Shown here: positions 1,930-16,471 of the stretch, one piece after another
How positions within the stretch are numbered: position 1 is the first letter of the stretch
How the letters are laid out: each line of letters begins with the position of its first letter
Assembly (NCBI RefSeq): GCF_006345805.1
Contig: NC_043009.1
Span: 21,948,001-22,012,000, forward strand
Direction of reading: 5' to 3'
Length of the DNA stretch: 64,000 bases
Origin: Octopus sinensis
Taxonomy: Eukaryota
Notes under the pieces: model-generated
The model's database searches: none
What the model saw: only the letters and a program-made list of their open reading frames with translations
What the model was told of the DNA's origin: nothing
Program-made: the position numbers and the translations under genes

Positions 1930-2058
1930 CTTTATTGTTTTCATTTTTGAACTTGGGACAAGTTTCACAACAGATCCTTTCAATGTCTCGTTGGTAACAT
2001 GTGGTAGGCTTAATGTATTTACAGTGAGGTGACATATCACCAAATTCACAACCTGGTG
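1930..2058 (-). CDS. Host gene exon: PLAC-like Cys module 3 (xPGCEFGDMSPHCKYIKPTTCYQRDIERICCETCPKFKNENNKG)
   Basis: Acceptor tttcttttttAG (alternative in-frame CAG 6 nt downstream, start 2052); donor GTCAGT at 1929; 129 nt, phase 1-1; same six-Cys spacing as the exons at 9443 and 10367. Confidence 0.9.
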
Positions 2059-2113
2059 CTAAAAAAGAAATATACAACATCAATTGTAATTGAGGCAAGT
2101 ATTTAATTACAAT

Positions 2114-2366
2114 GTGGAGGTGTGTGGCTTAGTGGTTAGGGTGTCAGCATCATGATCGTAAAATTATGGCTTCTATTCCTGGACTGGGCGACACGTTGTG
2201 TTCTGGAGGAAAACACTTCATTTCACATTGCTCCAGTCCACTCAGCTGGCAAAAAGGAATAACGCTGCGATGGACTGGCGTCCCGTCCAGCTGGGAAACA
2301 CATACGCCATTGAAACTGGGAAACCGGGCCCATGAGCCTGGCTAGGATTTAAAAGGGCGCATTTAA
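2114..2366 (+). mobile_element. tRNA-derived SINE family C
   Basis: Box A-like TGGCTTAGTGGTTAGG head; tail CCGGGCCCATGAGCCTGGCTAGG...AAAAGGGCGCAT shared with the copy at 17180-17455. Confidence 0.8.
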
Positions 2367-2370
2367 ACAT

Positions 2371-2628
2371 GGAAACATGGGTGTTTTGTTTGAATTCTTA
2401 TTCAGGGACCTTTTGTGCAGGATGGGCTACTTGACCCTAAAAAATTCTAACTGGGCCCCACCTGCAAGTAATGTGCTGTTTATCCTGATGTGAGATCGGC
2501 ACGTCAAGTACACATGGTTGTGATGCATGTGCCTGGTGTACCCTTATCAGGCAGGTAGTCATGATTGGCATATTGGGGTTTGTATATTTGTACCCCAGTG
2601 CCACTTTGATGGCATGTGCTGCTTTCAC
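2371..2628 (+). mobile_element. Partial copy of a ~550-bp TAA-flanked non-autonomous repeat
   Basis: Near-identical to 14061-14318 and the reverse complement of part of 54117-54664. Confidence 0.8.
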
Positions 2629-2877
2629 AGAAATATACAACATCAATCGTAATTGAGGCAAGTATTTAATTACAATAAACTATTGCAATTAGCTATAGCT
2701 GTTATTGAGTTTTAATTAGCCTCAGGTCAGATTGGATCAAGCAGTTTAAACCCAGATCAGTCTGGATCAAGCAGATTAGCTAGGATATTTAGGAAGGTAC
2801 ATGGCATCCAAGGTTACTTGCTGTAGCCCAATGTTAATCTGTTGTTCATAAATGAAATAATAATAATAATCCTCAAA

Positions 2878-3058
2878 TAGTGGGGAAGGGATTAAGTCAA
2901 TTACATCGACCCCAGTTCATAACTGATACTTATTTAATCGACCCCGAAAGGATGAAAGGCAAAGTCGACCTCAGTGGAATTTGAACTCTGAATGTAGCAA
3001 TAGGTGAAATACCACTAAGCATTTTATCCAGCATGCTAATGACTGTCAGCTCACCGCT
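2878..3058 (-). mobile_element. SINE family B copy
   Basis: Reverse complement of GAGTTCAAATTCC..GAGGTCGACTTTGCCTTTCATCCTTTCGGGGTCGATAAA motif shared with 63197-63794. Confidence 0.8.
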
Positions 3059-3252
3059 TTATTATTATTAAAAAACTCATTGTTTGAAACTGCAAGACTT
3101 TTTGAAGCATGATCAGTAAAAAAGGCTGAGAGTTTACATCAGAATAATAACAATAATAATAATAATAATAATAATAATAATAATAATAATAATAATAATA
3201 ATAATAATAATAATAATAATGATAATAATGATAATAATAATAATAATAATAA

Positions 3253-3805
3253 TTCAAACTGACAGAAAGATAGATGCGAATAGGCCAGACATCATATTGA
3301 AAGACTTCAGACAAAAAACATGCCTCCTCATTGATATGACTGTCCCAATCAATATAAACGTATCTGTCAAGACCTACCAAAAACTGAGCAAATATAAAGA
3401 TCTTGAAATAGAAATAAGCAAAATGTGGAATCTGAAGACTAAAACAATACCTGTTGTCATAGGTGCCCTGGGAATGATAGCAAAAGGGGCTGATTGCTAC
3501 CTAACTCAGATACCAGGAGACCCAAAAATAAAAGAAATTCAAAAGATAGTGCTCATGGGAACTGCTCATATCCTACACAAAATACTTCCTATGTAATCTC
3601 AAATTTTAAGACAAACATAATTTTCGTATGGTGTTTTAGACATTCACTAGTACAATACTAAGTACAAAACCAAATATATGGTGCCCTAGACATAACACCA
3701 ACATGAACTTCCAACTTGTCTTTTGAGATCTCTGGGTGAGACTTGGAGCCAACTTGTACACTTGTACAAATGTAAAGCAAAAGTCAAACATATAATAATA
3801 ATAAT
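3253..3805 (+). mobile_element. 5'-truncated R4/Dong-clade non-LTR retrotransposon (subfamily A), RLE C-terminus and 3' UTR
   Basis: QTDRKIDANRPDIILKD...LIDMTVP...KLSKYKDL restriction-like endonuclease motifs; (TAA)n on both sides. Confidence 0.9.
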
Positions 3806-3919
3806 AATAATAATAATAATAATAATAATAATAATAGTAATAATAATGATGATGATGATGATGATGATAATAATTAAGGCCAATATGTCAGAGATCATGA
3901 AGAAGAAAAGTACTTTCTA

Positions 3920-4287
3920 AATGATGTATCAATGCCAACAGATGACAACATTTCTCTAAAAGAAATGGAGAAACTTTCAAAATACAAAGACCTTGAAATA
4001 GAGGTAACTCGAATGTGGGGCTTAAAAACAGAAACAATTCCTATCATAGTAGGTACATTATGTATGATAAAAAAATATTCAGACAAATATATAACAAAAA
4101 CATCAAGACTAGCAAAAATATATAACATACAGAAAATAGCACTACCAGGCACCGCACACATCCTATGTAAAACACTTTCAATACAGTATCAATAAGAGCA
4201 TCACAACAAACCACAGCACATATCCAAGGCAGACAGGGCTGTATTCGGTAGTACAGTGAAAGCACGTTATAAAAACAAGACTACTGA
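3920..4287 (+). mobile_element. 5'-truncated R4/Dong-type element (distinct subfamily C)
   Basis: IDVSMPTDDNISLKEMEKLSKYKDLEIEVTRMWGLKTETIPIIVG, a diverged RLE C-terminus; followed by (TAA)n. Confidence 0.8.
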
Positions 4288-14318: not shown

Positions 14319-14631
14319 AGAAATATACAACATCAATTGTAATTGAGGCAAGTATTTAATTACAATAAATTATTGCAACTAACTATAGCTATTATTGAGT
14401 TTTAATTAGCCCCAGGTCAGCCTGGATCAAGCAGTTTAGTCCAGATCAGTCTGGATCAAGCAGGTTAGCTAGGATATTTAGGAGGGTACTTGGCATCTAA
14501 GGTTACTTATTGTAGCCTGATGTTAGGAATTTTTTACAATGGTCCAATCTGTTGTGCATAAATGAAATAACAATAATAATAATAATAATAATAATAATAA
14601 TAATAATAATAATAATAATAATAATAATAAT

Positions 14632-14890
14632 GATCCTTTCTACTATAGGCACAAGGCCTGAAATACAGGGGAAGAGATTCAGTTGATTACATTGACCCCA
14701 GTATTCAACTGGTACATAATTTATTGACCCCAAAAGGATGAAATGTAAAGTTGACAAATAAAAACTGTAATAATTTGTTCCAAATTTTGGCACGAGGTGA
14801 GAAATTTTGGAAGAAGGGGTATGAATTTTATTGACCTCAAAAGGACGAAAGGCAAAGCCAACATTGGGAGAATTTGAACTCAGAACGTAA
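14632..14890 (-). mobile_element. Two degenerate SINE family B fragments
   Basis: Reverse complement of the CATCCTTTT(G)GGGTCAATAAA..AGTACCAG motif. Confidence 0.7.
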
Positions 14891-15028
14891 ACTCTTCGAG
14901 GTTGTCCCCTAGCATGGCTGCAGCCCAATGATCAGAATGAGCAAAAGATAAAAGAGGAATACAATTTTATGAGGTGGGGGGAACAAAATACAAAAAACAA
15001 AAAACCCAGGGTACAAAATGATACTTAC

Positions 15029-15445
15029 ATCTGAAACAAATTGAGGTTTGCCAGATTGATCAACATTGAAAGTTTGAGAATTTCTTTCATATCCTTGGTT
15101 ATATGTAGGGTACTCTGGGTAGTAATTGGAATACGGTACCCTATTGTTGGGTACTCTAATAGGGTACCACCCTCCAGTGTTTATTACTTGTCTAGGGAAC
15201 TGTGCTCTATTACTTGGTATCAGCCTTGGATATTGAAGTCTATTATTTCGTACTCTGACAGGATACTGTCTTCCAGTGTTTGGTACTCGACTTGGGTATT
15301 GCCCTCTTGCAAGGGGTACTTGGCTAGGGTACTGTCCTGTATATGGTATCTGACCAGGGTACTGCCCCCCTGTGTGTGGTACCCGACTGGGATACTGCCC
15401 TCCAGTATGAGGTACTTGTCTGTGAATATTCCCAGTAATGAATGC
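15029..15445 (-). CDS. Host gene exon with tandem 11-aa Pro/Gln/Tyr/Gly-rich repeats (xxVPxTGGQYP)
   Basis: Acceptor tattttattttgtAG, donor GTAAGT; 417 nt = 139 codons, no stop, phase 0-0; reads AFITGNIHRQVPHTGGQYPSRVPHTGGQYP...SGKPQFVSD and joins VCPEID. Confidence 0.88.
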
Positions 15446-15654
15446 CTACAAAATAAAATATACAATTAGTGGATTTCAGATATGGACATTTTGGAATAAA
15501 ATAAAATCAAGAGAGAACAAATGGAGAAAAATACTGAAAAAAAACATTCAATAAATATCTTTGACACATTGTTTAGGAATTAACAGAATTCAGAACAGGT
15601 TTTTATCAGAGTATTAGTTTATAAATATATACACACACATATATATACATAAAC

Positions 15655-15818
15655 CATTTTCTATTTTCTCTCCTTGTTTATTTCTGTGTTCTTTTCTGTC
15701 AAAGAGTATGGGCTCGAAACGTAAAAGACCTTCTCACTTCTCGAGCGTTAAACTAATACATCTGTTTGTTGTTTACACACCTATCTTCATCTTTTGCTTT
15801 TTTTAAATTTCTCACTAT
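15655..15818 (+). mobile_element. Penelope-tail-like short repeat with degenerate minimal hammerhead core
   Basis: CTTTTCTGTCAAAGAGTATGGGCTCGAAACGTAAAAG; same family as 36755-36915 (minus strand). Confidence 0.6.
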
Positions 15819-15823
15819 ATATG

Positions 15824-16230
15824 AGGTACAGGAGTGGCCGTGTGGTAAGTAGCTTGCTTACCAATCACATGGTTCTGAGTTCAGTCCCACTGCGTGGCAC
15901 CTTGGGCAAGTGTCTTTTACTATAGCCTCAGGCCGACCAAAGCCTTGTGAGTGGGTTTGGTAGATGAAAACTGAAAGAAACCTGTCGTATATATGTATAT
16001 ATACATATGTGTGTGTATATGTTTGTGTATCTGTGTTTGTCCCCCCCAACATTGCTTGACAACCGATGCTGGTGTATTTATATCCCAGTAACTTAGCAGT
16101 TCGGCAAAAGAGACTAATAGAATAAGTACTAGGCTTATAAAGAATAAATCCTGGGGTCGATTTGCTCGACTAAAGGCAGTGCTCCAGCATCGCCGCAGTC
16201 AGATGACTGAATCAAATAAAAGAGTAAAAG
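15824..16230 (+). mobile_element. SINE family A, near full length
   Basis: tRNA-like head, internal (TA)/(TG) microsatellite, tail GGCAGTGCTCCAGCATCGCCGCAGTC...(AAGAGTA)n. Confidence 0.9.
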
Positions 16231-16351
16231 AGTATATATACATATACATATACACATATACACACACGTGTAAGTATACATGCACACACACACCATCATC
16301 ATCATCGACAACACCAACATAAGAACCACACTTTAAATGCATATGTCTCAC

Positions 16352-16471
16352 CTTGTTTCTTCGGTTTGGCCAATAACCATATGTCCTTCGTGGGCTTTCG
16401 ATTTTGGTCAGGATCCTGACACTGGGCACCGATCTCCTTGCATTTACAGATGAGGATTTAGATGATTCTGT
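16352..16471 (-). CDS. Host gene exon: Ser/Arg-rich linker (TESSKSSSVNARRSVPSVRILTKIESPRRTYGYWPNRRNK)
   Basis: Acceptor cttggttttgcAG (second AG 4 nt downstream gives a phase-1 start at 16467), donor GTGAGA; 120 nt; one open frame ending in phase 0, matching exon 15445. Confidence 0.75.

Follow-up and report, generated by a model that had tools for sequence, protein, structure and literature searches.

Which protein is encoded by a set of cysteine-rich exons on the minus strand of a stretch of octopus DNA, and is it part of a metalloprotease? The stretch, called the window below, comprises 64,000 nucleotides of the Octopus sinensis contig NC_043009.1 (assembly GCF_006345805.1, positions 21,948,001 to 22,012,000 of the forward strand). 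A first-pass annotation, made from the letters alone, had placed an unannotated gene at positions 1930-16471 of the window, in which a Q-Y-P repeat linker is joined to three PLAC-like Cys modules, and had suspected a secreted protein without a protease domain. We find that these exons are the middle part of the gene LOC115218597. Its product has five such modules and no protease, and belongs to a type of protein that predates the split of molluscs and brachiopods and has been retained since then.

The window was searched by tblastn and with six-frame regular expressions, and the exon borders were read base by base. Joined together, the five minus-strand exons of the first-pass annotation (exons 3 to 7 in Table 1) form a single open frame of 317 codons, with the phases 0-0, 0-0, 0-1, 1-1 and 1-1. 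Each of them is preceded by a pyrimidine tract and AG and followed by GT, the donors being, in order, GTGAGA, GTAAGT, GTAAGA, GTAAGT and GTCAGT. The spliced translation of 317 amino acids is identical to residues 52-368 of XP_029644353.1 (100% identity, 100% coverage), the 458-residue product of LOC115218597 of O. sinensis, and all residues at the exon junctions agree with it. This identity to a RefSeq protein places the five-exon pattern far beyond chance. The exons, splice sites, phases and single frame proposed earlier could thus be rebuilt in full, and a real multi-exon cephalopod gene was recovered exactly by reading raw sequence. The word “unannotated”, however, has to be withdrawn: the gene is already catalogued in RefSeq, where it is named only “uncharacterized protein”, so it is not a new gene, and the value of the locus lies at the level of the domain and the family.

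The extent that had been proposed for the gene was also too small. In GCA_006345805.1, the range of LOC115218597 is about 114 kb, on the minus strand and with introns rich in transposable elements, and the window therefore carries exons 2 to 7, that is, six of approximately nine exons from the middle of the gene. Exon 2, which is added here to the exons known from the first pass, has its acceptor AG at 25640-25639 and the donor GTAAGT; its starting phase is 1, as an Asp codon is split here and has its first base in exon 1, outside the window. Exon 1 with the signal-like N-terminus and modules 4 and 5 had no match in the window by exact words, 4-mers or low-stringency tblastn (the queries for exon 1 were the N-termini of both O. 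sinensis and O. bimaculoides), and the exons that encode them are therefore located outside. The count of three modules is thus correct for the window, but the full protein has five. We regard the gene structure and the protein architecture as described here as practically certain.

XP_029644353.1 is made up of a hydrophobic, signal-like N-terminus (residues 1-30; in total, 51 residues precede the exon with which the first-pass annotation began), a Cys-free half of about 200 residues, and five six-Cys modules. The signal-like N-terminus suggests secretion. An AlphaFold2 model of the full protein, for which an alignment of 20 relatives was used, has a confident helix at residues 3-20, a predicted local distance difference test (pLDDT) score below 50 at residues 23-218, and a pLDDT mostly above 90 at residues 230-458. 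Residues 23-218 are predicted to be disordered, while every module is modelled as a bundle of short helices, with a small hairpin insertion in modules 1 and 5. Residues 92-230 consist of 14% Pro, 11% Gln, 10% Arg, 10% Tyr, 9% Gly and 9% Asn and contain no Cys at all. The Q-Y-P repeats are real and present in eight copies, with spacings of 11, 10, 11, 11, 11, 11 and 11 residues between units. At the DNA level, Tandem Repeats Finder detects just a 33-nucleotide period with 2.4 copies (15336-15415). They are not an inter-domain linker, as had been thought, but the main body of the disordered N-terminal half. In most of the five-module relatives introduced below, a dibasic K/R-R site follows the signal peptide at a distance of 30-60 residues (e.g. 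LRKREA, LFKRNI, RHKRDI), and such a site is found in octopus as NARRS (residues 62-64, exon 3); it may be a conserved cleavage site for a proprotein convertase.

To which proteins is the module region related? Residues 231-458 of XP_029644353.1 were used in an exhaustive HMMER search, whose hits are cluster representatives; it yielded 142 matches at E<=1e-3 and 25 at E<=1e-30. The named hits come only from molluscs, brachiopods and annelids. From these matches, 634 six-Cys modules were taken, with C-8-C-7-C-8-CC-2-C as the commonest spacing, CEYGD[RK] as the typical start, and a Tyr after the third Cys (C3) in 412 of the 634. The modules occur in three architectures: protease-less five-module proteins (A), protease-bearing proteins (B), and multi-module proteins of the bivalve Mya (C), which have at least 16 modules before a hydrophobic segment resembling a membrane anchor. 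The sole Pfam match of this segment is a transmembrane-segment model, below threshold. Automatic labels across the family are inconsistent and include ‘ShKT’ and ‘ADAMTS7-like’; the multi-module Mya proteins have been named ‘neurogenic locus notch homolog’ and ‘TNFR-Cys domain-containing’.

Architecture A comprises about 20 proteins in which the whole five-module region is matched in one C-terminal stretch. They have a Cys-free low-complexity region rich in G, S, T, Y, Q, R, P and N and, where they are apparently full-length, a signal-like N-terminus ahead of it. Named members are found in gastropods (Gigantopelta, Haliotis, Lymnaea, Bradybaena and Plakobranchus), bivalves (Dreissena, Sinanodonta and Tegillarca), the chiton Liolophura, the brachiopod Lingula, and Octopus, including O. 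bimaculoides. In an alignment of 20 of these proteins, none of the 30 Cys varies, and every one of the five positions shows its own signature. Scored against all positions of the array, each of the five octopus modules scores best at its own position, including the exon 5 module, which fits best at position 1. The octopus protein thus has all the features of the array family, namely the signal-like N-terminus, the Cys-free low-complexity region, five position-specific modules and the 30 invariant Cys. Many of its relatives are encoded on contigs of about 2 kb that contain the full coding sequence, which suggests that these contigs are transcripts. The five-module proteins are labelled ‘uncharacterized’ or carry misleading automatic names; a protease-less family protein is called ‘ADAMTS16’, for example.

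These relatives also bear on the question of whether the gene is intact. As the introns are crowded with LINE (long interspersed nuclear element), transposase and microsatellite sequence, the exons could be remnants or could have been mis-joined in a region rich in transposable elements, so that the gene model would be an artefact or the gene would be decaying. It would fit this explanation that a repeat fragment adjoins the exon 7 acceptor and that precisely the exon 7 module (module 3, 1930-2058) is missing from the O. vulgaris gene model. However, the frame is open and the splice sites are canonical in every exon, and O. bimaculoides has the same predicted exon set, exon 7 module included, the modules being 94% and the repeat region 87% identical to those of O. 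sinensis. Moreover, the 30 Cys are kept from octopus to brachiopod, and many relatives are found with their whole coding sequence on the transcript-sized contigs. Given this conservation, an artefact is very unlikely, with a probability close to nil. Since exon 7 has the phase 1-1, skipping it preserves the frame, and the absence of module 3 in O. vulgaris could be an isoform produced by exon skipping or a gap in the annotation. The O. bimaculoides protein carries one extra 11-residue QYP repeat, and the copy number thus varies between close species.

The module itself has the consensus C-x-[YF]-G-D-x4-5-C-x7-C-Y-x8-CC-x2-C and is predicted to be mostly alpha-helical. In the octopus protein, the modules measure 31-44 residues from first to last Cys; modules 1 to 3 are encoded by one exon each, and modules 4 and 5 are contained in residues 370-458. 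A scan of the window in all six frames for the pattern of the first-pass annotation, C-x3-D...C...CY...CC-x2-C, gave exactly three matches, in exons 5-7 and in no other place. The PLAC-type pattern C...C...C...CC-x2-C is present in all five octopus modules and in the 634 family modules. Nevertheless, neither the spliced peptide nor the full protein, the single modules or the consensus modules had any Pfam match at threshold. The gathering score of PLAC (PF08686) is 26.4 bits, whereas the best octopus module, module 5, attains 14.1 bits (E 0.08) and the consensus module of array position 3 attains 15.4 bits. When 143 diverse family modules were scanned singly against Pfam, the sub-threshold matches were to PLAC for 17 modules (best E 0.001), to Crisp for 6 (best E 1.4e-4) and to ShK for 1 (E 0.012), so that PLAC was the commonest family. 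As no module attains the PLAC gathering score, “PLAC-like”, the term already chosen in the first-pass annotation, is the proper wording.

PLAC and the present module have in common six Cys within about 30-40 residues, an Asp soon after C1, adjacent C4 and C5, and C6 two residues further on. PLAC is likewise found C-terminal to M12B protease domains and also in protease-less relatives; it sits at the C-terminal end of ADAMTS, ADAMTSL and papilin proteins or of proprotein convertases, whereas in the relatives studied here the module follows Reprolysin and ADAMTS_CR_2. The module differs from PLAC in its x-[YF]-G-D start and in the Tyr after C3. In addition, it occurs in tandem arrays of up to about 20 copies as compared to the single terminal copy of PLAC, and the proteases that carry it are without TSP1 repeats.

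A profile of the family modules had no match among the PDB sequences even at E 10. With the module profile, a word-indexed protein database gave just 2 hits out of 6 candidates, too few to be informative. An AlphaFold2 model of module 2 alone has a pLDDT of 89.4 and four short helices. Its sole PDB neighbours in a Foldseek search are Cys-rich domains of snake CRISP proteins and a minimal ShK homologue, with query-normalised TM-scores (template modelling scores) of 0.53-0.65 and root-mean-square deviations of 2.0-2.9 A, but at E-values that are not significant. A Foldseek search with the full-length model gave a ribosomal structure as its sole match, which is meaningless. The ShKT/CRISP Cys-rich domain (PF01549, PF08562) resembles the module as modelled in being a small all-helical six-Cys domain that is often found after metalloproteases in invertebrates. 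The disulfides of the ShK/CRISP-CRD fold are C1-C6, C2-C4 and C3-C5. The O. vulgaris orthologue is named “ShKT domain-containing protein” in UniProt, which implies a match to the PROSITE ShKT profile there; none of the octopus modules matched Pfam ShK. The two differ in their spacing, as C4 and C5 are adjacent in every family module, in contrast to C4-x3-C5-x2-C6 in ShKT. They also differ in their hosts, since ShKT classically accompanies astacins (M12A) (PMC6409789) and this module M12B/ADAMTS-like enzymes. By the tests run, the module is not assignable to PLAC or to ShKT. We read it as a distinct, un-modelled small helical six-Cys domain with PLAC-type Cys spacing and, judging from the structure models, probably an ShKT-like fold.

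The resemblance to ShKT raises the possibility of a salivary or venom protein, in which the modules would be ion-channel-blocking or toxic ShK-like units comparable to cnidarian peptides and to the ShKT proteins of gastropod saliva. The UniProt name and the Foldseek neighbours, with the CRISP domains being those of snake venom, are consistent with this, and a blood-feeding snail makes ShKT proteins in its salivary gland (PMC6409789). However, the same five-module array is present in filter-feeding bivalves, grazing gastropods, a chiton and a brachiopod, which makes a venom-type role unlikely. The C4-C5 spacing also argues against it, as does the single weak ShK match among the 143 modules, and a 200-residue disordered half combined with a fixed five-module array is unlike the known small ShK toxins. 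We thus consider a role of this kind improbable.

Could the modules instead be the end of a protease? The full XP_029644353.1 contains no catalytic domain, and the motif HExxHxxGxxH is absent from the full protein as well as from all six frames of the window. A tblastn search with 12 reprolysin-bearing relatives matched only the module exons, and the window contains no exon for a reprolysin domain, in agreement with the earlier statement that it holds no HExxH exon. The gene models of three Octopus species do not add a reprolysin domain from exons beyond the window either, and XP_029644353.1 has no Pfam match to TSP_1, ADAMTS_spacer1 or ADAMTS_CR. About 20 full-length relatives are likewise protease-less and share the architecture. 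Together with the signal-like N-terminus, these results agree with the protease-less secreted protein that had been suspected.

In architecture B, by contrast, the module is attached to a protease. At least 12 of the scanned proteins have a Reprolysin and an ADAMTS_CR_2 domain followed by tandem modules, without TSP1 repeats; they belong to a chiton, Gigantopelta, Patella, Solemya, Mactra, Sinanodonta and the leech Helobdella. The statement that GCEYGD...CCxxC repeats follow the reprolysin domain in molluscs was therefore correct, and the leech can be added. The modules of octopus exons 6 and 7 (modules 2 and 3) are up to 51% identical to protease-attached modules, with E down to 9e-8. Lophotrochozoan M12B proteases such as Liolophura XP_064597393.1, Helobdella XP_009023306.1 and Gigantopelta XP_041374976.1 thus share the module family with the octopus protein, but have Reprolysin and ADAMTS_CR_2 in the place of its disordered region.

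Since the same module is the ancillary C-terminal region of M12B proteases in the same phyla, we infer as the likeliest role a matrix-binding or protease-modulating one similar to that of ADAMTSL proteins and papilin, and assign this reading a probability of roughly 35-40%. ADAMTSL proteins and papilin are secreted, are built of modules similar to the ancillary domains found in ADAMTS enzymes, have no catalytic domain, and may bind matrix and modulate ADAMTS activity (PMC4448532). In the extracellular matrix, the octopus protein would play a part like the one they play towards ADAMTS enzymes. Through its five modules it would attach to matrix partners or substrates to which the M12B enzymes of lophotrochozoans bind with their own ancillary modules, and this binding would anchor the protein, compete with the proteases or modulate them. 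From the disordered half, rich in Tyr, Arg and Pro, would come an extended multivalent segment, which might be glycosylated or cross-linkable. The relation to ADAMTSL and papilin is put forward as an architectural analogy, not as a demonstrated homology. The octopus protein is without TSP1, ADAMTS spacer, Cys-rich, Kunitz and Ig domains, and half of it consists of disordered repeats.

Several points weigh against such a role. As there are no TSP1, spacer or Cys-rich domains, the module shared with the proteases is the sole basis of the ADAMTSL analogy, and this module falls short of the Pfam thresholds for PLAC, ShK and Crisp. The Foldseek E-values for module 2 are 2.9-8.5 and thus not significant, as is usual with a query of 38 residues. 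The signal peptide was called by eye and from the AlphaFold2 helix at residues 3-20, rather than by a dedicated predictor. No full-text literature on LOC115218597 or its relatives turned up in a search of incomplete coverage. Finally, the composition of the disordered half is similar across phyla, and the main structural function could equally sit there.

If it did, the protein would be a structural or biomaterial protein, whose Tyr/Arg/Pro/Gln/Gly-rich disordered half works through Tyr cross-linking, coacervation or O-glycosylation, while the five Cys modules would merely be stable knobs for anchoring or oligomerisation. Candidate materials are cuticle, egg-case or stalk cement, adhesive mucus, and the organic matrix of shell or stylet. 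It speaks for this alternative that the Cys-free low-complexity composition has been kept despite complete divergence of the sequence, that not only the octopus protein but also relatives contain short tandem repeats (e.g. GGQPTYT in the Haliotis protein), and that the QYP copy number varies among octopus species. However, the literature search yielded no proteomic or expression support for it. The family occurs in shelled and in essentially shell-less animals alike and is thus not bound to one material. Besides, it is the modules that are most strictly conserved, both between the two octopus species (94% versus 87%) and in the 30 Cys that are invariant across phyla. A biomaterial function is the main alternative to the matrix role; we rate it as rather unlikely, though well ahead of a venom-type role.

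Returning to the matrix role modelled on ADAMTSL and papilin, a more far-reaching version of it is that the octopus gene stands for an undescribed, ancient lophotrochozoan matrix family that came from the ancillary region of a lineage-specific branch of M12B proteases or gave rise to it. The protease-less proteins would then be partners or regulators of the enzymes, as an independent, convergent counterpart of the ADAMTS-ADAMTSL/papilin system, made from a domain family for which current domain libraries have no model. This wider proposal is tentative, and we hold it to be somewhat doubtful.

Judging from the full-text search, which had incomplete coverage, neither the domain subfamily nor the conserved family of protease-less five-module proteins appears to have been described. 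The module is widespread among lophotrochozoans, where at least 142 protein clusters together contain hundreds of copies, and Pfam has no model for it. No long-standing question is settled by this finding. Defining the domain would, however, clean up the annotation of metalloproteases in molluscs, annelids and brachiopods, and would offer a handle on the poorly known biology of the extracellular matrix in these animals.

Table 1. Exons of LOC115218597, QYP repeats and repetitive elements in the window
Feature	Position	Strand	Description
Exon 2	25577..25638	-	Residues 31-51, DYEFNTTATTNFTEETDGRVT; N-glycosylation sequons; located by tblastn of XP_029644353.1, 100% identity
Exon 3	16352..16471	-	120 nucleotides; residues 52-91; phase 0-0; Ser/Arg-rich, TESSKSSSVNARRS...WPNRRNK; first exon of the first-pass annotation
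Exon 4	15029..15445	-	417 nucleotides; residues 92-230; phase 0-0; Cys-free, Pro/Gln/Arg/Tyr-rich, predicted disordered
QYP repeats	15128..15406	-	8 tandem 11-residue units within exon 4; consensus (G)QYPxRVPxTG
Exon 5	10367..10520	-	154 nucleotides; phase 0-1; Cys module 1, long form, CPEID...INGLLCPDAIDRFGSHLCY...CCEKC
Exon 6	9443..9574	-	132 nucleotides; phase 1-1; Cys module 2, GCEYGDHSSQC...CY...CCEAC
Exon 7	1930..2058	-	129 nucleotides; phase 1-1; Cys module 3, GCEFGDMSPHC...CY...CCETC
Interspersed repeat, piece	2059..2110		About 50 nucleotides, nearly identical to the ~300-nucleotide repeat; directly upstream of exon 7's polypyrimidine tract and acceptor
Interspersed repeat, copy	2400..2720		~300 nucleotides, intronic
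Interspersed repeat, copy	14090..14410		~300 nucleotides, intronic
Non-LTR remnant	4466..8717	+	LINE-type, intronic
Non-LTR remnant	34742..36703	-	LINE-type, intronic
Non-LTR remnant	45305..50165	+	LINE-type, intronic
Transposase remnant	11049..11681	+	Mariner-type (Transposase_1, E 7e-13), interrupted by stops
(TAA/AAT)n microsatellite	11924..13804		About 1.9 kb, 645 copies, 88% matches; intron 4-5; local GC content about 5%
(ATC)n array	16487..16809		About 107 copies; begins 16 bases upstream of the exon 3 acceptor
Spurious reading frames	16199..16890	both	Long, Asp-, His- and Met-rich
Reverse-transcriptase-like frame	29343..30758	-	472 codons; YIDD-type motif

The identity of the spliced product to XP_029644353.1 marks the window as octopus nuclear DNA. 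It is AT-rich and packed with microsatellites and open reading frames (ORFs) of retroelements, and whatever is not exon is intronic. The long spurious ORFs near exon 3, which occur on both strands, are produced by the (ATC)n array. Next to exon 7, the piece of the interspersed repeat means that part of the 3' splice region of this exon is repeat-derived. Among the ORFs in the remnants of retrotransposons without long terminal repeats (non-LTR), some match RVT_1 (E ~1e-29 to 1e-30) and others are of the endonuclease type; an ORF1-like protein is also present, which carries a CCHC knuckle and has a tail of poly-Gln/Thr-Pro. The 472-codon ORF has no Pfam match at E<=0.001; it sits in a GC-rich, strongly GC-skewed stretch at 28-30 kb and is probably from another class of retroelement.

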